From Macrostomum lignano (lineage: Eukaryota): DNA of 64,000 nt. A program made the translations under genes and the position numbers. The notes under the pieces are model-generated. The model did not search any database, was not told where the DNA came from, and saw only the letters and a list, made by a program, of their open reading frames with translations. The stretch spans positions 196,026-260,025 of the forward strand of contig NIVC01001611.1 in NCBI GenBank assembly GCA_002269645.1, read 5' to 3'. Positions 2,578 through 39,989 of the stretch are shown piece by piece; position 1 is the stretch's first letter, and each line of letters begins with the position of its first letter.

Positions 2578-5500
2578 GCCAAGCCAAAGTCAGCTGACCA
2601 ATCAAACAAAGCCGGCAAATCTTTAAAGGCCAAAGCCAAATTGGCCAAAGGTTCGTCTGGCAATGGCGTTTCTAAGAAACGCCGGCACTGGAAACAGCCG
2701 CCATCAGACAGAGGCGTTGACGAAGCTCTGGCTTTGTCTGTTGACGCCAAGTCAGTTGCTAAGCAACTGCGATCGACTGATAGGCCGCCATCCAGGGCCA
2801 CCCTGCGACTGGCCACCGCCTGTCTGATGCAGTGCGTCAGGCATGTGAATAAAGAGCCGCGTGCCTTTAATAGCATTGTGCGTGCCTGTCTGCGGCACTG
2901 GGTTCGCGCCGCTGACTCTGTGCTTGGACGTATTGCTAATGATAATGATGCTGGCGATGAGCAAGAGCGAGATGATGAAGACGAAGACGCTGGATTGCGG
3001 GTATTTAATTTTCTGTTTATCACTTTTAAGCTTAAAGATAAAAAACAAATATTTTTTTCGATGAGATACTACTCGCCACTATACTTTCACAAGTATCATT
3101 ATTTTACCTAAAAATCTGCTTAATTAGAATCACTGATTGCCCTGAGAATCTGCTCCATCAGAATCACTGATTGTCCTGAGAATCTGCTCCATCAGAATCA
3201 CTGATCACCCTGAGAATCTGCTCCATTAGAATCACTGATTGCCCTGAGAATCTGCTCCATTAGAATCACTGATTGCCCTGAGAATCTGCTCCATCAGAAT
3301 CACGGATTGCCCTGAGAATCTGCTCCATCAGAATCACGGATTGCCCTGAGAATCTGCTCCATCAGAATCACGGATTGCCCTGAGAATCTGCTCCATCAGA
3401 ATCACTGATCACCCTGAGAATCTGCTCCATTAGAATCACTGATCACCCTGAGAATCTGCTCCATCAGAATCACGGATTGCCCTGAGAATCTGCTCCATCA
3501 GAATCACTGATCACCCTGAGAATCTGCTCCATTAGAATCACTGATTGCCCTGAGAATCTGCTCCATTAGAATGACTGATTGCCCTGAGAATCTGCTCCAT
3601 TAGAATCACTGATTGCCCTGAGAATCTGCTCCATCAGAATCACTGATCACCCTGAGAATCTGCTCCATTAGAATCACTGATTGCCCTGAGAATCTGCTCC
3701 ATTAGAATGACTGATTGCCCTGAGAATCTGCTCCATTAGAATCACTGATTGCCCTGAGAATCTGCTCCATTAGAATCACTGATTGCCCTGAGAATCTGCT
3801 CCATTAGAATGACTGATTGCCCTGAGAATCTGCTCCATTAGAATCACTGATCACCCTGAGAATCTGCTCCATCAGAATCACGGATTGCCCTGAGAATCTG
3901 CTCCATCAGAATCACTGATCACCCTGAGAATCTGCTCCATTAGAATCACTGATCACCCTGAGAATCTGCTCCATTAGAATCACACAAACTATTCCTATCC
4001 CCTACAGACTCCTTCATCCTATCCGAGATGGGAGAAGATTCGCGTCACCTGCAAGCAGTACCTGAACTGCGTATTGCTACTGTTAGACAAGCTCAGAGAT
4101 CAGGAAGCTGTACGCGCCATCGCGCAGCACTGCCTACCATTGCTGCCCTACTTTCTGTGTCTGCCTCGCACTCTGAAGCCGCTATTAAAATCTTTGATTA
4201 GCCGCTGGAGTCAAGGCCCGGCTCCCATCACTGTGCTAGCCTTTCTAGCCTGTCATCGAGTTGTTAAATCGAGAAAGTCTCTGTGCGAACAGGCCTGCAA
4301 ATGGATGCTAGCCAACTATTTGCAGTCGGCCAGGCTAGGCGACTCGGCATTAGCCGTGCTGCAACAGCGAACCCTTTGCGAGATGCTGTTATTGCAGCCT
4401 AATTTAGCTTATAAACTGGCATTTGTGCACCTGCGCCAGTGCGCCGCCGCTCTGGGACGAGAGTCGCAACAGGGCGGCACCGGGGAGAAGAGCGGCAGAA
4501 AAACAAAGACTACTAGTAGTAGCAGCGGGTCTTTGTTGCAAAAAGCGCCACTGTATGCCGGCCTGTGGCTATGGAGCCGGCTGGTGGCTGCTAGCGATGA
4601 GCTGACCAGTTTGGTAAGAGTCACTTTAGTATCCACCCTAAATCACTGCAAGAATCGCCCTAAATTGCTCCAAGAATCGCCCCTAAATCACTGCAAAAAT
4701 CCCCCTAAATCACTGCAAGAATCGCACCTGAATCACTGCAAGAATCGCCCCTAAATATCTATAAACATCGCCCCTAAACGAAGCAACAATCGGACGAACT
4801 CGCAGGTGTACCCGCTGACCCAAATACTGGAGGCTCTCTGTCGAACGCTGGCCGCTGCTCGCCACCTGCCGTTGCGGGTGCACTGCCTTCGAATGCTGCT
4901 GCACTTGGCCAGGCAGACCGGCGCCGCCACGGCGCTACTGCCTGGCGCTCTGGCGCTGCTCGATTTGGCAGATTTCAACAAAGGCGTCGCCAGTCGGGCC
5001 CTGAGCTTAGAAGGCATCACCAAGCTGAGCCAGTCGCAGCTGAAAAGCCCGTCTTTTCGAGCCGCCGTTTCGGACGTTGCCTACGAACTGCTGGCCGGCT
5101 GGGTTCGATCAGCCTGTCAGCTGACCGCCTTTCCTGAGCTCTGTCTGCCTTTAACTCGGCGATTGAAACGATTAGCAAAGGTTTGTACTGGCTTTGGGGA
5201 TGCTCTGATTTGCTGTTTGCATCTGATTGATTAGTAATTCTCTGATTGGCTGTAAGAATATGCGTAAATATAAGCTATTCTCTCATTGGCTGAAAGACAA
5301 ATAGCTATTCTCTCATTGGCTCGAAGGCCAATAACTTGCTATTCTCTCATTGGCTGGAAGGCAGCTATTTGCTGATTGGCTGAGAGACAATGCCAAATAT
5401 CCCACCCCCATATTCTTCTCTTAGGACTGCCGTTGCCGGGCAGTTGCTAAGCCGGCTGCCCAGCTCCTCCGTCTAACCATGGAAGCGGCCAGTTGGACCC

Positions 5501-7055: not shown

Positions 7056-9756
7056 TCAGTCGCCGTGGATCTCATCCTCCAGATCGGCATAGCAGCGCTT
7101 AAAGACCAGGCGGTTCCTAGTGAGCTTGTACAGCGACACGAGGTTAAACAGCATCATGATGGCCGAGGACAGCACCTTGTACCATTCGTGGCACTGCAGC
7201 AACACGGCAAACTGCAGCACCAGCAGCAGGGCGATGGCGCACTGCAGTCCGTCAGCCAGACGCATAGGGCTGTAGAAGAGGCTGTGGAATCTGGAGTGCA
7301 TGGAGTTGCCCGGCTCGGCGCTGTTGGTGATGCCCTCCGCTTTGAACAGGCCTTTCACGTGTTTCACCAAGGCGCCCTGCTGCCACACCTGAACAAATCG
7401 GAATTGCAAAAATTCGAATGCAGCTACTGAGAGTCAGATTTTGCTACTAAAATTGCCTGCCGGTGATTTTTGGGGGCGCCTGCTACAATGGGTTGCGCCA
7501 TCTACAGAGGGAGGCGCCAGCTAAAGAGGGAGGCGCCAGCAAAAGAGAGAGGCGCCAGCTACAGAGGGGGCGCCAGCTACAGAGAGAGGCGCCAGCTACA
7601 GAGGGGCGCCAGCTACAGAGAGAGGCGCCATCTACAGAGGGGCGCCAGCTACAGAGAGAGGCGCCAGCTACAGAGGGGCGCCAGCTACAGAGAGAGGCGC
7701 CATCTACAGAGGGGCGCCAGCTACAGAGGGAGGCGCCAGCTACAGAGGCAAAAGTTCAGCGCCCTATAAAAGGCGGATTAAATACCTTAGCGCAAAAACA
7801 ACGCCTCTCACCTGCAGCTCAGACCAGGGAATATACGGCACCTGGGCGCTGCCTCTACCCTCAACTCTGACCCAGCAGCCCAGATGCAGGGCGCAGCGAT
7901 GCAGGGTGTCAATCCGATGAGGCGGCAGATGATGCTGGGTGTAAAATAGGAAAGCAGAAGCCACAGTGACGGCTACGTGAACACCGCAGAACCAGGGCTC
8001 CAGGTAGATTGTGTTCTGCGAATAATTATTAAATTACATCTAAATCAGGAGACATAAGTTTACCATGCACATACATTACATTGGAATTATTGCTTATTAA
8101 ACACTTAAATTTGTTGGCCATTTGAAATTTTCTCCAATATAATGAGAATAAAAACGCGCCTAAGACACAATATAAAATACTACAGAGTTACAGTAATATG
8201 TAATTAAGCAGAATTTTATATTGCGGCAAAGCGATTTGTAATAAAAGCACTTCTGTAGAACTATTAATTAAATTATTTTATTCCAACGATTTCAAACTAA
8301 TTTAGAATTTGTTTTATCATGCACTCAGATTTATAGCTGAGAAATTCTATCCTGACTACTTTTAGTCTCATATTTATTTAAGTAGGACGTTAAAATCAAT
8401 AATTTGAAAGTATTATAGTCTCAGACACTTGAGTAAATAGATGTCACTCGCAATTACAGTTGTGAAAAAGCAGAGCGTCTATCTACTCTGTTAATAGCCC
8501 AATCTACGAGTAGCTCAGTTATTGAGAGAGCAGTAAGGAGAGAGATCAGTCAGAATAGTTCAGCCAATGAGAGAGCAGTAAAGATTAGATGACTTAGTCA
8601 GACAAACAAACGAGGCTGGCTCAGCCAATGAGTGAGCAGTAAGGAGAGAGATCTGTCCGAATAGTTCAGCCAATGAGAGAGCAGTAAGGATTAGATGACT
8701 TAGTCAGACGAACAAACGAGGCTGGCTCAGCCAATGAGAGAGCGGTGAGGAGAGAGATCAGTCAGACGGACGAAAATCCTTAGGGACCAGGCCCAATCTA
8801 GCTAAGCCAATGAGAGTTGTAAGGAGAGAGGTCAACGTTTGACGACAAATCTCGGTATTTAATTTTTTGTTGCAATGATCAATATTAAATTATTTTTAAT
8901 GTTATAAAGACAAAAACGTAAATTTAGCTAGCAAAAAAAGTGATAAGCGCATTTTTTGCCAGTATTTATACATATCTAACTGTTATATTATAGTGATTAT
9001 AATTTATAGCTGAGCATTGGACGTTAAAATTTCTTAGCAAAATCTATTATTTTTTTACAGAAATACAAACAAGTGGATTAGATAAGCCTGTGCAATGGTA
9101 CATGGTAGGCAAGATATTAGAGTAATAAGCACACGCTAATCTTATAAAGTGCACACACTTGTTTTCTTAGAAACAAATTGTAAGCTCAGTTTAGCAGAAA
9201 AGATGACAATCTTCTACGAACTAAGAAAGCACAGAGTGAAGTTATTAGAACGTCAAGGTTCAACCCACTTTAATTTAATCGCGCGGCTGACAATTTCTAT
9301 TAGCTTGTTAAATTGAATCCTAATTGAATAACCAATCGGACTTACCCAGCAATCGGTTTCACAATAGGCAGTTTGTATCTGGGAGCGAATTGAGCAGCGT
9401 ATGTGGGGGATTAAGCATTATTATTATCATAAGATTTGATAATGACCGATGACGCCAATTTTATGCTATCAGGTGACATTAGTAAAAATATTATACTACT
9501 AGCAGTAAGATATCAATATGGGAGACTTGACGAACAACAATTTAACCATAAGCCGGAATACTGCAAAATGTATTGCGAATGGATGGTTAGTAGAGACAGG
9601 AGAAGCTGCAGCTTGTAATCGTAAACAAAAGGGAAACAATATTCAAATGCCAACTGTACTACTGTAGTAATATCATCGAACAATGATTGTACATTTATCA
9701 AGTGTTAGCTGCCATATTCGATAAATCTGTCTGTCTGTTGTCTATCTCTATATCTG

Positions 9757-14745: not shown

Positions 14746-16765
14746 CACCCCTCTTCTAGACTATGGGTATAGGACCCTTTTTAATTTCTTTTTTTAATTT
14801 ATAATATATAAAATATAATTTTTTAAAAACTATACAATGAAAACTTCTTTTGCATTAATAATTTTATGGCTATAATTTTATGGGCCCATAAGTATAAACA
14901 TATATCTGTTAATAGTTTAAGAAAATGGTTAGCCTAATTAATAGTTGAACAATTTGAATATGACTAGATGTATACCATTAACACATGGTCTTACTTAGCA
15001 TTAGGCAATATTTTTTTAAACTCAAATTTAAACACCATTAGTATCAGTAAACGTTTCCATTGTCTACATCAGCTTTTTATCAGCTTGACTACAAAAGCAT
15101 TTTTGCTAAATGAGTCTACAAGATTAAGTCTATGACTATGACTATAGTCAACTTCTCTGAAATGACAAAAAGTTTATTACAAAAAATTGTAACGAGCTAT
15201 GGACAGTGGACATAGCAGTTTTTTACCAATACTTACACGTATGAATGTGATATGCGCGATATATTGCGTTTTATCGCAGGCATCGTCTGTTTGACCAAGA
15301 CAATAAATTAAGAAACTTCTGAGTCCTGAAACTATTAATGTAATAATGTACAACTACAGGTACAAAGTAGTAGTCACAACCACTGTTTAGATTTATTTTA
15401 TATTAAGTCTTGACAAGTTCGCAAAAGTACAACATAACTAGGAGGTACAATGCTGAAAGTCAGACAAGGTAATTGAGTTTTCGCTAGCTATTCTTTATTT
15501 ATTGATTAATGTTTTTTTTATTTTAGGCACAAAGATATCTAAATAGATTGTTCTTAGAAACATCACACTTAAATTGCCGCCTCCGACAATTTATAAAAAT
15601 TAGTGCATATCTAAACAAAAAAATGATTATTAACACCCATGGTATACAGAAAACATATTGAAAGCTAAAGTTTTTTTAACGGCGTAAAATTTTATCTCTC
15701 TTGACCGAAAAAATGCTAAATAATCCTAAATACTGAAAATGAATACGCTTTATGCGAGTGTATGTCGGACATTTAAGAGCCCGCTACCCGATGTGCCTGA
15801 GAACTGTATGGCAAAATTTATATTGCGCCAGTCTGGAATCAAGTATTTTAGTAGTTTTTAACAAATAATAATGCAGTAGCAAACAGAATTAGCTACACAG
15901 AAATAACGTTAAGAGTTATTGATATTCAAATCTGTCTGAAAGTATGACAGGTGAAAGTCAAAGTCAACCTTAACAAGGAAAAAATGAAATCAAACACGCT
16001 ATAATTTGTTAGTCGTACCAATTCGAGAATGTATACTTGGTCACATAACTCTAATGCATGCTGGACTTAGTGTATTTTTGAGTCGCACAAACAATTAAGT
16101 TAAATTAAAAAAAACTAAATAAGGATCACGAGCTAGTTACGATAAACCTTGCAGAAGTTAGCTGCTAAGAAAACAAAAGAGGGGCACCTATAAATACTTA
16201 CTCAGGTAAACGGGAAAAACAATTATTAATCAATAATTGCAAAGAAGCTAACAAAAAACAGGCAAGATTGTGCAAATTAGTAATATCTAAGGGCAAAGTG
16301 CACAGAAGCATGCAGTTAGAAAGCAAAGCAAGCAGATAAAGTGGATGATAAGTGAGGAAATAAATAAGCAAGCAGTTATTTAGCATTATATTTGAACAAT
16401 ATTACAAATTACAACAGCAAAGTAAGTGGGGAAATAAAACAACAAATTGCTATTTGCAGAAACAGAAATGAGATATAGATAAAAACATGAACTATTTGTT
16501 CAAAAAAGTATTGGGCCAACAAGCGGTGTATTTGAATGTTGATTGGCTTAAATAAAATATTACCATTAAAAACCAAATATTGAAAGAATCAAGTAGAAAA
16601 CGCCAACTCTGCAATAGGCAGACTATGGAAAAAGTTCCACTGACAAAATTTATTCTCAGACTTGGAATTTGAAGAAAAACTGTGTTGATAAATTAAACAA
16701 AGTTTATTACATTATTCGCCTACTAAAAGTAGGCTAATCGTGACATCTTACAAATCAGATTAGAG

Positions 16766-17222
16766 TGAGACAGAGATAGACCAGACTGAGACAGAGATAG
16801 ACCAGACTGAGACAGAAATAGACCAGACTGAGACAGAGATAGACCAGACTGAGACAGAGATAGACCAGACTGAGAGAGAGATAGACCAGACTGAGGCAGA
16901 GATAGACCAGACTGAGAGAGAGATAGACCAGACTGAGAGAGAGATAGACCAGACTGAGACGGAGATAGACCAGACTGAGAGAGAGATAGACCAGACTGAG
17001 ACAGAGATAGACCAGACTGAGAGAGAGATAGACCAGACTGAGACGGAGATAGACCAGACTGAGACGGAGATAGACCAGACTGAGACGGAGATAGACCAGA
17101 CTGAGACGGAGATAGACCAGACTGAGAGAGATAGACCAGACTGAGACGGAGATAGACCAGACTGAGGCAGAGATAGACCAGACTGAGACGGAGATAGACC
17201 AGACTGAGACGGAGATAGACAG
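16766..17222. repeat. 21-bp minisatellite (GAGATAGACCAGACTGAGACG)
   Basis: About 22 units immediately downstream of the LOTUS-only ORF. Confidence 0.95.
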
Positions 17223-17238
17223 GCCACAAAAATCTAAC

Positions 17239-17655
17239 CTAAGCCGCTGGGGCAGGACTAAACGGATCTAAAACGGGCGGCGGCGGCGGCGGCGGCGGTG
17301 GCGGAGGCGGCGGTCGCCTCGGTCGCTCGGCCCGAATCAGACTGACAATATGAGCAGTCCTGGGAGTGACAACTCCGTGACAGACAATCCGACGACCTGA
17401 GACCTCAATTTGGACAACGTGCGGCAGAGACTCCAGATATTGGCGCAGATTGGCGTATTGACCGCCGAAGCTCCAGTCTAGCGGTCGATGGCACAGTCGT
17501 AAATATTGCCGTTCAAGCGACGGCAGAGGGACACCCCGTCGAGCTGATAACAGAACAGCCCTAAGTTGGCTCTCCTGTTCAAGGATACGAGCGTGCTGCT
17601 GCTGCCGTTCCGCGTCTGGAACTGGCGCCGCTTCCACTGCCGCCGCTTGAGCCAT
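17239..17655 (-). CDS. Small LOTUS (OST-HTH) domain protein with poly-Pro tail, 138 aa
   Basis: ATG at 17655. LRAVLLSARRGVPLPSLERQYLRL...LRQYLESLPHVVQIE...CHGVVTPRTAHIVSLIRAER aligns by eye with the N-terminal extended LOTUS domain of TDRD7/TDRD5. GC-rich codon usage like the other exons. Confidence 0.8.
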   Translation of the reverse strand: MAQAAAVEAAPVPDAERQQQHARILEQESQLRAVLLSARRGVPLPSLERQYLRLCHRPLDWSFGGQYANLRQYLESLPHVVQIEVSGRRIVCHGVVTPRTAHIVSLIRAERPRRPPPPPPPPPPPPPVLDPFSPAPAA

Positions 17656-17775
17656 GCAAAATATAGGCAATTTCACTTGCTATTAGGCATTTCACAGATT
17701 GGAAACTACTATAAGTAGAAAGAATGCGATGCGAAACTAACTATGATTACAACATTCAATGTTTGTGTGATGAGA

Positions 17776-18176
17776 CTGACTGACTGACTGACTGACTAAC
17801 TGACTAACTGACTGACTGACTGACTGACTGACTGACTGACTGACTGACTGACTGACTGACTGACTGACTGACTGACTGACTGACTGACTGACTGACTGAC
17901 TGACTGACTGACTGACTGACTGACTGACTGACTGACTGACTGACTGACTGACTGACTGACTGACTGACTGACTGACTGACTGACTGACTGACTGACTGAC
18001 TGACTGACTGACTGACTGACTGACTGACTGACTGAGCGATTGAGTGAGAGGGTGAGCGATTGAGAGAGTGAGAGAATGAGTTAGTGAGCGAGAGTCGGTG
18101 AGTGAGTGAGCGAGAGTCGGTGAGTGAGTGAGTGAGAGTCGGTGAGTGAGTGAGCGACAGTCAGTGAGTGAGTGAT
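17776..18176. repeat. (CTGA)n microsatellite followed by a degenerate (GTGA)n tract
   Basis: Near-perfect CTGA run 17776-18034. Confidence 0.95.
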
Positions 18177-18655
18177 CAAATAAATGAGTGATAAGTAATT
18201 AAATAAACATTTTGAAATTTCTCAAACAGAAAAATAAACGCAAATGAAACACCACAGGAAATTTTATTTCGTTTATTAAAAAAAATGTAATAATTGGTAT
18301 AGTAATAATGATGACAGTCTGAAGATTTATTAGTATACTTTTTATATTATTATTATATAATACTCATATTTATACCTATATTTAAAACTAATTATTTAAG
18401 AACACCGGAAAAAAAAGCTATTTAACAAAATAAACAAAAATAGTTAGGATATATAATTGGCAGTTAATATACTTTTTTCTAAAAATAAACTTATAAATCG
18501 ACCTTTGCAACAGAAACTGGCAAAGATAATTATAGTTAGTAAATGCTTTATGCACACAAATTTGCACTACGCATGTACAATATTATGAAGGCGTCTTGGA
18601 GCAAATCAAATGAAATCGCATAATATTATTTTATCGAGAGTTGAATAAACCACTC

Positions 18656-19262
18656 ACTAGCCAATCAAAAAATTGCATATCTTATCAAACTTTCTTTATC
18701 AGCCAATCAGAGAATCACAAATCTTATCTAACTTTCTTTATCAGCCAATTAGAGAATCGCATGTCTTATCTAACTTTCTACATCAGCCAATGAGAGAATC
18801 GCAAGTCTTATCTAACTTTCTACATCAGCCAATGAGAGAATCGCAAGTCTTATCTAACTTTCTACATCAGCCAATCAGAGAATCGCATGTCTTATCTAAC
18901 TTTCTACATCAGCCAATGAGAGAATCGCAAGTCTTATCTAACTTTCTACATCAGCCAATCAGAGAATCGCATGTCTTAACTAACTTTCTACATCAGCCAA
19001 TGAGAGAATCGCAAGTCTTATCTAACTTTCTACATCAGCCAATCAGAGAATCGCATGTCTTAACTAACTTTCTACATCAGCCAATCAGAGAATCGCTTGT
19101 CTTATCTAACTTTCTTTACCAGCCAATCAGAGAATCGCATGTCTTATCTAACTTTCTTCATCAGCCAATCAGAAAATCGCATATCTTATCTAACTTTCTT
19201 TATCAGCCAATCAGAGAATCGCATATCTCATCTAACTTTCTTCATCAGCCAATCAGAGAATC
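18656..19262. repeat. 42-bp minisatellite (TCTTATCTAACTTTCTACATCAGCCAATCAGAGAATCGCATG)
   Basis: About 14 units, each with AGCCAATSAG. Confidence 0.95.
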
Positions 19263-19326
19263 TCGTTATTTTTCCTTCATCAGATGACTTTCAGGTCAAG
19301 TTGGTTTACTATGCTCAACTGTCTTC

Positions 19327-20163
19327 TCAATTGACCAGCTCAACCAATGGCAGCAAGCCGGCAGTCTCACTGCCTTTAGTCAGCAGCCGAAAATTCCTGG
19401 CCGGCAGCCAGCCGTCATCACTGGAACAGCCGCCAGTCAGCACCCTACTGACGCTGCGCCGCTGACACCTGACAAAACCGCAGGCTGGCGGCAAATTAGC
19501 CAATCGCAATCGAATGAAGCCAAGTTCGCGAGCCATTTGTTTTATTAAATCTTCGTTCGCCTGCCGCCTAGATAAGTGCAATATAAGGCGACACACAGGC
19601 GGCAGGCGAATCAGCTGATCTAGCTGGATTCGCTGACAGCTGCTGCTGCTGCTGTTGAATGGCCAGTCCATCAGCACAATGTCGCCTAATTCAGCCGAAT
19701 AGTCCACGTCTAGCAGTGAGCATCGAGCCAGACAGCCGTCCGCTTCAACTAGATAGATTTCGTCCGATAGAATGACATCGGCTTGGCAGCGAACTCGACA
19801 GTGAAGAGCCGGCTCGGCAGTCAGGCGATTCAGTAACTGCCCGGCTTCGTCCAGTGTCGACTCAATTGAGCGGCGAAGCTCGACGATCGGGATGGTTTCT
19901 ATAGCAACAAGATCTTCGGCGGCGGCCTCGTCAGAGTTCAAGAGGCGATAGCGGGCGGTAAACTGTTGGCCAGAGCGAAGCGCTGATAGGTTGATGAAGC
20001 TCGTCTCGATGAAGCCGGGAGTCTGCGGCGGCGGAGACGGCGGCATGAGCAGGTTTGGTTGCTGCTGCTGTTGCTGCTGCTGCGATGGATTTCTTGTGTA
20101 GATGTACGGCCTGCAAAGGGCAGTGTGAAAATACAGGCGCAAAAATAGACAGACACACAGACT

Positions 20164-20203
<40 letters not shown>

Positions 20204-20255
20204 CAGACAGACAGACACTAAGACAGCCGGACAGACAGAGACACACAGACAGAAG

Positions 20256-20348
<93 letters not shown>

Positions 20349-20374
20349 CAGACAGACAGACACACAGACAGACA

Positions 20375-20439
<65 letters not shown>

Positions 20440-20451
20440 CACAGACAGACA

Positions 20452-20524
<73 letters not shown>

Positions 20525-20551
20525 GGCGGACAGACAGACAGACAGACAGAC

Positions 20552-20620
<69 letters not shown>

Positions 20621-21303
20621 GGCAACTCACGGCAGAGTTTGCAGCGACTCTCTGGCTGCTGCTGGTCGGGGCGGAGGCGGTGGATTTTGCGACAGCTTCG
20701 TCTTTTGAGACGGCCGCATGAGCGGCTTTGGTTGCTTCTGCTGTTGCTGGGATGGAATTCTGTAGATGTATGGGTTGCAAAGACCGGTTTGCAAATACAC
20801 ACTCTTGGAACGATACTTTGGCTTGAGGACAAATAAACAGATGGACAAACACACAAACAGACGCAGACAACTCACGGTAGAGACTGTCTGGCTGCTGGTT
20901 GGGGCGGAGGCGGCGCATTTTGCGACACCTTTGCCTTCTGAGGCGGCGGCCGCCTAGAGACGGGAGCCGAGCCCGCGCCCCTGTTTCGCTTTCGCTTTTT
21001 ATTAGACTTCTGCTTGTTGATCAGTTCCACAATAGCGCGAGAGGACTCCGTGACCACGCCGAAGCACCTGTAGCCGCCGCTGGACATTGGGTCCCGGCTG
21101 AGTCGGACCACATGCGGCAGGCCGGAAAGGTACTCCAGCAGAGTGCCCCGGCCTTGAAGGTCGAGCTGTTTTGAAGCCAGTACGCGATAATCTCTGAGCA
21201 CTTCGCCAAGAGGCACGCCCTCCTTTGACGAGAGCAGCAGACAGCGGAGATTTACTTCTTGTTCTTCCTGGAATGCCAGCAGCGGTGACGATTTCCGGGG
21301 CAT
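19327..21303 (-). CDS. LOTUS + degenerate extended-Tudor protein (TDRD5/Tejas-like architecture), ~446 aa
   Basis: complement join(19327..20110,20631..20759,20876..21303); phases 2,2; total 1341 nt. N-terminal eLOTUS: [20 protein letters not shown]...TLLEYL..LPHVVRL...[20 protein letters not shown] Pro/Gln linker follows, then the Tudor-like [17 protein letters not shown]....DIVLMDW....[11 protein letters not shown]. Confidence 0.78.
20146..20620. repeat. (GACA)n microsatellite in a LOTUS-Tudor gene intron
   Basis: Direct reading. Confidence 0.97.

Positions 21304-23434: not shown

Positions 23435-39989
<16,555 letters not shown>

Follow-up and report, generated by a model that had tools for sequence, protein, structure and literature searches.

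In a 64-kb window of the genome of the flatworm Macrostomum lignano (the whole stretch of contig NIVC01001611.1 that we analysed, 64,000 nucleotides in length), two adjacent genes on the minus strand, here called gene A and gene B, encode LOTUS/OST-HTH domains. Contig and window agree at every base over 21.9 kb. The winged-helix core of this domain is present in both genes, and both domains belong to the extended LOTUS (eLOTUS) subclass, of the type known from TDRD5, TDRD7 and Oskar. As a whole, the locus is best explained by two separate eLOTUS genes which belong to a lineage expansion and whose domains would bind Vasa, a reading that we consider reasonably probable. An earlier sequence-only reading of this stretch, made without database searches, had pointed to two adjacent, same-strand and clearly diverged LOTUS genes in a flatworm-like genome; the species bears out the latter, and the former holds within the limits of the profile scores and the domain identity reported below.

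Two extended LOTUS genes at one locus

The pair was delimited with a profile of the eLOTUS domain built from 30 homologues, with all Macrostomum sequences left out, and run on the six-frame translation of the window. This search identified two minus-strand reading frames with a LOTUS domain and no others, at the outer limits given by the sequence-only reading, scoring 79.8 bits for gene B (E 1e-23) and 61.5 bits for gene A (E 5e-18), with the next best fragment at 6.8 bits. The LOTUS domains of the two genes are 39% identical, which makes them clearly diverged from each other. In window coordinates, and with lengths in amino acids (aa), the two genes are laid out as follows.

Gene A, exon 1: 20876..21303, minus strand, open reading frame (ORF) and splice donor GTGAGT read directly, start ATG at 21303; contains the eLOTUS domain (about aa 12-105, about 20989-21270), a basic KKRKRNR patch and the start of a Pro-rich linker
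Gene A, exon 2: 20631..20759, minus strand, Pro/Gln-rich linker, with GT..AG introns on either side
Gene A, exon 3: 19327..20110, minus strand, poly-Q/Pro linker, C-terminal region of about 240 aa (about 19330-20052) and stop codon
Gene B: 17239..17655, minus strand, single-exon ORF of 138 aa with ATG at 17655 and stop at 17239; contains the eLOTUS domain (aa 26-112, about 17320-17580), a Pro-rich tail and the stop codon

The three exons of gene A give a coding sequence of 1341 nucleotides (nt) and a protein of 446 aa, and its two introns, of 116 nt (20760-20875) and 520 nt (20111-20630), both run from GTGAGT to AG. The spliced model contains the whole of GenBank entry PAA65856.1 (BOX15_Mlig029870g2, hypothetical protein, partial) at 100% identity; in UniProt this entry is labelled "HTH OST-type domain-containing", and an older UniProt model agrees with the N-terminus of gene A. 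Gene A is already public, in GenBank and UniProt, as an OST-HTH protein, and it is transcript-supported, the GenBank annotation of M. lignano being derived from the transcriptome (PMC5730564). Gene B is the LOTUS-only gene that the sequence-only reading had proposed: it consists of the eLOTUS domain and a tail with a run of 15 prolines, 13 of which lie past the 114-aa end of the eLOTUS profile query.

Because in-frame TAA and TAG codons stand just 5' of the gene B ATG, and no AG acceptor was found that would join the phase-2 donors of gene A to the frame of gene B, the two are separate coding sequences. The possibility that both ORFs are exons of one gene, which had been considered when the pair was first described, is ruled out on the same grounds. 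AATAAA signals follow gene A at 18331, 18277 and 18268, and gene B at 16708 and 16654. The G+C (GC) fraction of the exons lies between 0.57 and 0.61 (0.61 in gene B), as opposed to 0.24-0.31 in the unique, AT-rich flanks, which are rich in micro- and minisatellites; such a composition is typical of this genome.

What sets the extended subclass apart is a C-terminal extension of the LOTUS domain that forms helix alpha5 upon Vasa binding (Jeske 2017, PMC5458760), in agreement with the weight that the sequence-only reading had placed on this extension. In Oskar, Tejas/TDRD5 and Tapas/TDRD7, the eLOTUS domain binds to the C-terminal RecA domain of open-state Vasa and stimulates its ATPase, and eLOTUS proteins recruit Vasa to nuage or germ plasm (PMC5458760; PMC12138184). 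The motif GVVT-x(2,3)-[ST]-x2-IV-x-LI, previously read as a C-terminal helix shared by the pair, occurs in both genes (as GVVTPRTAHIVSLI in gene B), and in the AlphaFold model of the gene B domain it forms the C-terminal helix. For both proteins, alignments to TDRD5, TDRD7 and Oskar continue through this helix; for gene A the helix was assessed solely from alignments, which extend up to residue 103 in the case of TDRD5 and up to position 97 in that of the profile.

Sequence comparisons place both domains among the same relatives. Against the Protein Data Bank (PDB), phmmer aligned gene B with TDRD7 (2lh9, E 2e-6; 3rco, E 6e-6), TDRD5 (E 0.01) and Oskar (E 0.012), the Oskar alignment covering alpha5, and it aligned gene A with TDRD5 (3s93, E 1.5e-4) through the C-terminal helix, as well as with TDRD7. 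A HMMER search of 1.84 billion representatives with gene B returned 40 matches at E<1e-3; OST-HTH/LOTUS was present in all 25 that were scanned with Pfam, those with source names were all TDRD7A, TDRD7B-like, TDRD5 or "HTH OST-type", and the alignments extended to query residues 108-113.

Structural evidence comes from gene B, whose domain was modelled by AlphaFold from a 33-sequence alignment with a mean predicted local distance difference test score (pLDDT) of 91.9, the terminal helix lying at construct residues 82-91 (pLDDT 84 in that block). With this model, Foldseek retrieved TDRD7 (3rco, E 1.5e-5, root-mean-square deviation 1.2), the Vasa-bound Oskar LOTUS domain (5nt7_A in entry 5nt7, E 1.7e-4), to which all 92 residues aligned, alpha5 included, and, also among the matches, TDRD5 and Tejas (8wxs). 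Two positions of the Vasa interface described by Jeske 2017 are informative here, Oskar A162, where TDRD7/TDRD5 have Ala/Ser, and Oskar L228, where TDRD5/7 have Ile (PMC5458760); we mapped them by chain numbering in the alignment with 5a48. At the equivalent of A162, gene B has Ala and gene A has Cys, a residue also found there in Mlig016662, a further M. lignano protein, and in a spider TDRD7A. The equivalent of L228 is Ile in both genes, and none of the four columns that are invariant or nearly so (R, L, P, H) is lost in gene B.

Family relationships and surroundings of the pair

A third family of M. lignano LOTUS proteins, Mlig016662/Mlig011525 (PAA66381.1, PAA82620.1 and PAA75115.1), is encoded on other contigs and unlinked to the pair. 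Its LOTUS domain is 51% identical to that of gene A and about 40% identical to that of gene B, and by LOTUS and a common C-terminal domain gene A is nearer to it than to gene B. Among the systems compared with the pair, this family is the nearest true relative. Members of the Mlig011525 family exceed gene A in length and possess an RG-rich linker as well as a further middle region. Residues about 300-375 of Mlig011525g2 (PAA75115.1, 652 aa) include a linker rich in RG/RGG and an additional middle segment of ordered appearance, neither of them with a counterpart in gene A, and the eLOTUS profile found no second LOTUS domain there. A search of the literature and supplements for the Mlig identifiers returned none.

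In a neighbour-joining tree of eLOTUS domains with bootstrap, gene A groups with Mlig016662 (92.5%) and gene B joins them at 74.5%; the nearest outsider to this M. lignano clade is a sea-urchin TDRD7B-like protein, with 21% support. The earlier view of the pair as lineage-specific stands in part: the two genes fall in a clade of their own species, but an unlinked third family lies closer to gene A. The clustering of the three M. lignano LOTUS domains is best explained by a lineage-specific expansion, and the tree suggests that one ancestral TDRD5/7-type gene gave rise to at least three families, of which gene B would be the earliest or the fastest-diverging branch. In its layout (LOTUS domain, Pro-rich tail, stop) gene B resembles exon 1 of gene A (LOTUS domain, basic patch, Pro-rich linker), which suggests that only the first exon was duplicated, gene B having the look of a copy of the first-exon module of a gene A-like gene.

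Gene A carries a duplication of its own. The tail of exon 1 with the start of its intron is 75% identical to the tail of exon 2 with the start of intron 2 (E 1e-23), the end of intron 1 with the head of exon 2 is 69% identical to the end of intron 2 with the head of exon 3 (E 4e-11), and both introns begin GTGAGTTG. Judged by these alignments, exon 2 is an internal tandem duplication junction, at which the head of exon 3 is joined to the tail of exon 1. The duplicated segment comprises the exon 1 tail, the intron and the exon 3 head, and exon 2 is retained in the transcript-based GenBank model.

The block of Myo6, gene A, gene B and Tmp39 is present in three near-identical syntenic copies (NIVC01001611.1, NIVC01001575.1 and NIVC01002426.1) that differ mainly in satellite copy number, with about 0-1 variable sites per 100 nt in unique sequence, which is consistent with the known redundancy of M. 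lignano DV1 (PMC5730564). The upstream neighbour of the pair is myosin VI (23435-31261 and beyond, minus strand), with Myosin_head, MYO6_lever and Myosin-VI_CBD domains, and the downstream neighbour is a Tmp39 family gene (below 15283, minus strand). Long (GTCT)n/(AGAC)n arrays in the myosin introns gave rise to the spurious 400-500-aa "ORFs" that appear in the program-made ORF list. Further hidden LOTUS or Tudor exons in the window were ruled out by six-frame profile searches. Tandem Repeats Finder located the following repeats in and around the two genes.

16762..17220: 21-bp minisatellite, 22 copies, directly 3' of the gene B stop
18659..19262: 42-bp minisatellite, 14 copies, between the gene A stop and gene B
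20147..20620: (AGAC)n microsatellite, which fills intron 2 of gene A

Gene B is flanked by a (GACT)n array and the 21-bp minisatellite, and the latter is probably inside the 3' untranslated region of gene B, as the AATAAA signals at 16708 and 16654 come after it. By motif count, every unit of the 42-bp minisatellite bears a CCAAT-box-like AGCCAAT[C/G]AGAG. This 12-mer occurs 20 times in the window, compared with 0.06 expected, in three clusters with unrelated spacers: 18701-19258 (plus strand), which is the 42-bp minisatellite, 8562-8816 (plus strand) and 5240-5355 (minus strand). We take the motif to fit an extended NF-Y/CCAAT-box consensus; the clusters could be arrays of transcription-factor sites or a dispersed repeat family.

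The C-terminal region of gene A, the status of gene B and alternative readings

The longer gene had been described from its sequence as combining LOTUS with Tudor, and this claim found no support on closer analysis. Pfam detected no Tudor domain in gene A at E<=1, and the C-terminal region, searched as a profile together with its paralogue, had no match in PDB at E<=10. When compared with an alignment and a profile built from the Tudor domains of seven LOTUS+Tudor homologues, it received a probability of 0.1% from hhalign (against the TDRD5/7 Tudor alignment) and -1.5 bits from hmmsearch, as opposed to 236 bits for the positive control; nor was any Tudor-like fragment found in the six-frame translation of the window. 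Homology of the region was found instead with the C-terminal part of Mlig011525g2, at 33% identity across 120 aa (E 1e-5). A word-indexed search with the C-terminal 231 aa was negative at E<=10, a result which is untrustworthy because the search missed the identical PAA65856.1 in the collection, and a search with full-length gene A was swamped by low-complexity words and returned only its own cluster. On the evidence of sequence, then, the C-terminal region of gene A is not recognisably Tudor. The accessible part of the text of a 2025 survey of the Tudor family does not give the TDRD5/7 status of M. lignano.

One alternative, a weaker version of the LOTUS+Tudor claim, regards gene A and the Mlig011525 family as ordinary TDRD5/TDRD7 orthologues whose C-terminal extended Tudor has diverged past sequence detection, and this is a possibility of some substance, although not the one that we favour. 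Homologues of TDRD5/7 likewise place a Tudor domain after an N-terminal eLOTUS and a disordered linker, flatworm proteins often evolve fast, and a low-confidence model of the C-terminal region shows the order strands, long helix, strands, which is compatible with the layout of an extended Tudor. However, not one of the sequence searches above gave a Tudor signal, and with 7 F, 2 W and 3 Y in 241 aa the region is so poor in aromatic residues that an aromatic cage is not evident. The AlphaFold single-sequence model of the region (pLDDT 31.6) is itself too poor for use, and we kept it out of the fold search; given an unusable model and a Tudor-like position, a Tudor domain at the level of the fold is a reasonable possibility. 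Several further observations weigh against the reading of the locus as two Vasa-binding eLOTUS genes. Pfam OST-HTH, the check that had been suggested for the pair, matches both genes, though below its gathering cut-off of 23.8 bits (22.4 bits in gene B, 19.9 bits in gene A), while the independent eLOTUS profile is strong. The Cys of gene A at the A162 position is small but not the canonical Ala/Ser, gene A has Ala in place of the near-invariant His of alpha5, and the placement of the M. lignano clade with respect to TDRD5 and TDRD7 has no bootstrap support. Finally, gene B was found in none of the protein collections searched, GenBank and UniProt among them and the word-indexed search included, and an exact-sequence look-up in assemblies had nothing on record; moreover, the identity of its ORF in all three assembly copies (0 differences in 417 nt) is uninformative on constraint, since unique non-coding flanks are nearly as conserved.

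These last points lead to a second alternative, in which gene B would be a non-functional remnant left by the partial duplication of a LOTUS gene, comprising its first-exon module and yielding no protein, or none any more. We give this an appreciable chance, though less than even. Its absence from both public annotations, its truncation to a LOTUS domain with a low-complexity tail, its position among minisatellites and the lack of any sign of constraint across the assembly copies all fit a relic. On the other hand, its 138-codon ORF has stayed intact although about 60% of its amino acids differ from those of its paralogues, it has the top eLOTUS profile score in the window with every near-invariant residue kept, and it forms a GC-rich island resembling the neighbouring exons, with a plausible ATG behind upstream stops and AATAAA downstream. 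Its absence from the annotation could also be explained otherwise: the GenBank annotation dropped transcripts that overlapped repeat annotations (PMC5730564), and gene B is hemmed in by repeats. On balance, we lean towards gene B being a functional gene.

As regards mechanism, the alpha5 helix, a small interface residue in the first helix (Ala in gene B, the non-canonical Cys in gene A) and the Ile of alpha5, through which Oskar, Tejas and Tapas contact Vasa, are kept in both domains, and this makes Vasa binding the most likely one. Chromatoid bodies containing Vasa and Piwi are found in the neoblasts and germ cells of flatworms, and in M. lignano macvasa and macpiwi are expressed in germline and neoblasts. 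Both Vasa (macvasa) and Piwi genes, present in M. lignano, are lacking in parasitic flatworms (PMC5594548). Judging from the conserved residues, the partner of both eLOTUS domains would be a Vasa-type DEAD-box helicase (macvasa), bound in its open state through the C-terminal RecA domain. By analogy with the known systems, this binding may stimulate the macvasa ATPase, and gene A may couple Vasa activation, in granules of the germline or of neoblasts, to a scaffold made up of its linker and C-terminal domain. The product of gene B, should it be expressed, would activate Vasa without scaffolding, as a soluble modulator or competitor, and its poly-proline tail could engage partners of the SH3, WW, EVH1 or profilin type. 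As a hypothesis, the role put forward in the sequence-only reading, in chromatoid bodies, germline granules or the piRNA pathway and with the short paralogue as a Vasa tuner or competitor, is plausible. A different view of the mechanism would treat the LOTUS domains mainly as RNA-binding modules, for G-rich or G-quadruplex RNA, and not as Vasa regulators. LOTUS domains have been reported as G-quadruplex RNA binders (Ding et al. 2020, as cited in PMC12138184), and a basic KKRKRNR patch directly follows the LOTUS domain of gene A. Yet both belong with the extended LOTUS domains, in which the helix that defines the subclass is the Vasa contact, and no RNA binding by the Oskar eLOTUS domain was seen by Jeske et al. 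(PMC5458760); we thus regard a primarily RNA-binding role as improbable, bearing in mind that RNA and Vasa binding are not mutually exclusive.

Known eLOTUS systems and implications for M. lignano

TDRD7/Tapas is one system with which gene B can be compared. Both have an N-terminal eLOTUS domain with the C-terminal helix, the LOTUS domains of human and mouse TDRD7 are the best sequence and structure matches of gene B, gene B shares with TDRD7 the Ala at the Oskar A162 position, and the M. lignano clade falls, without support, on the TDRD7 side of the tree. In contrast, TDRD7 has Tudor domains, of which none is detectable in gene A and none is present in gene B, and by the eLOTUS profile the M. 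lignano genes are without additional minimal LOTUS domains. Gene A can be compared with TDRD5/Tejas, with which it shares the order of an eLOTUS domain, a disordered linker and a single C-terminal domain, and whose structure 3s93 is its best PDB match; the two differ in the C-terminal domain, not recognisably Tudor in gene A, and in the Cys of gene A where TDRD5 has Ser.

The eLOTUS domain of Drosophila Oskar (5NT7, with the C-terminal domain of Vasa) has the same fold, alpha5 included, and compatible residues at the A162 and L228 equivalents, at an identity of only about 21-25%. Oskar is insect-specific, and its OSK domain is absent from the M. lignano genes: no Pfam family other than OST-HTH, and hence no OSK (SGNH-hydrolase-like) domain, was found in gene A, and gene B ends after its poly-Pro tail. 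The minimal LOTUS domains of the MARF1 type differ from those of the M. lignano genes in that the latter have the C-terminal extension; MARF1 (5yad) was a weak Foldseek match to the gene B model (E 0.17), and Pfam gave no matches to the NYN or RRM domains of MARF1-type proteins in the pair. A parallel of another kind is found in Caenorhabditis elegans, where MIP-1/MIP-2, which have LOTUS domains and disordered regions but no Tudor, and LOTR-1 recruit the Vasa homologue GLH-1 to germ granules (PMC12138184). Like gene A and the Mlig011525 family they are lineage-specific and Tudor-less, a likeness which is an architectural and functional analogy only.

In many respects the locus holds an expected gene family in an expected place. 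What is new here is an unannotated LOTUS-only ORF and the apparent replacement, or else extreme divergence, of Tudor in the M. lignano LOTUS family. The more far-reaching scenario, in which M. lignano has remodelled the TDRD5/7 system, with non-Tudor C-terminal scaffolds and an expressed, stand-alone gene B that activates or titrates Vasa, seems to us rather unlikely. To our knowledge, LOTUS components of flatworm chromatoid bodies are undescribed, and the locus supplies two candidates, with the Mlig011525/016662 family as a third. M. lignano is tractable by transgenesis and RNA interference, and a natural LOTUS-only protein would be useful for asking whether Vasa can be activated apart from any scaffolding. 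If the remodelling scenario were true, gene B would be a soluble regulator of helicase activity in the germ granules or chromatoid bodies of a stem-cell-rich animal.

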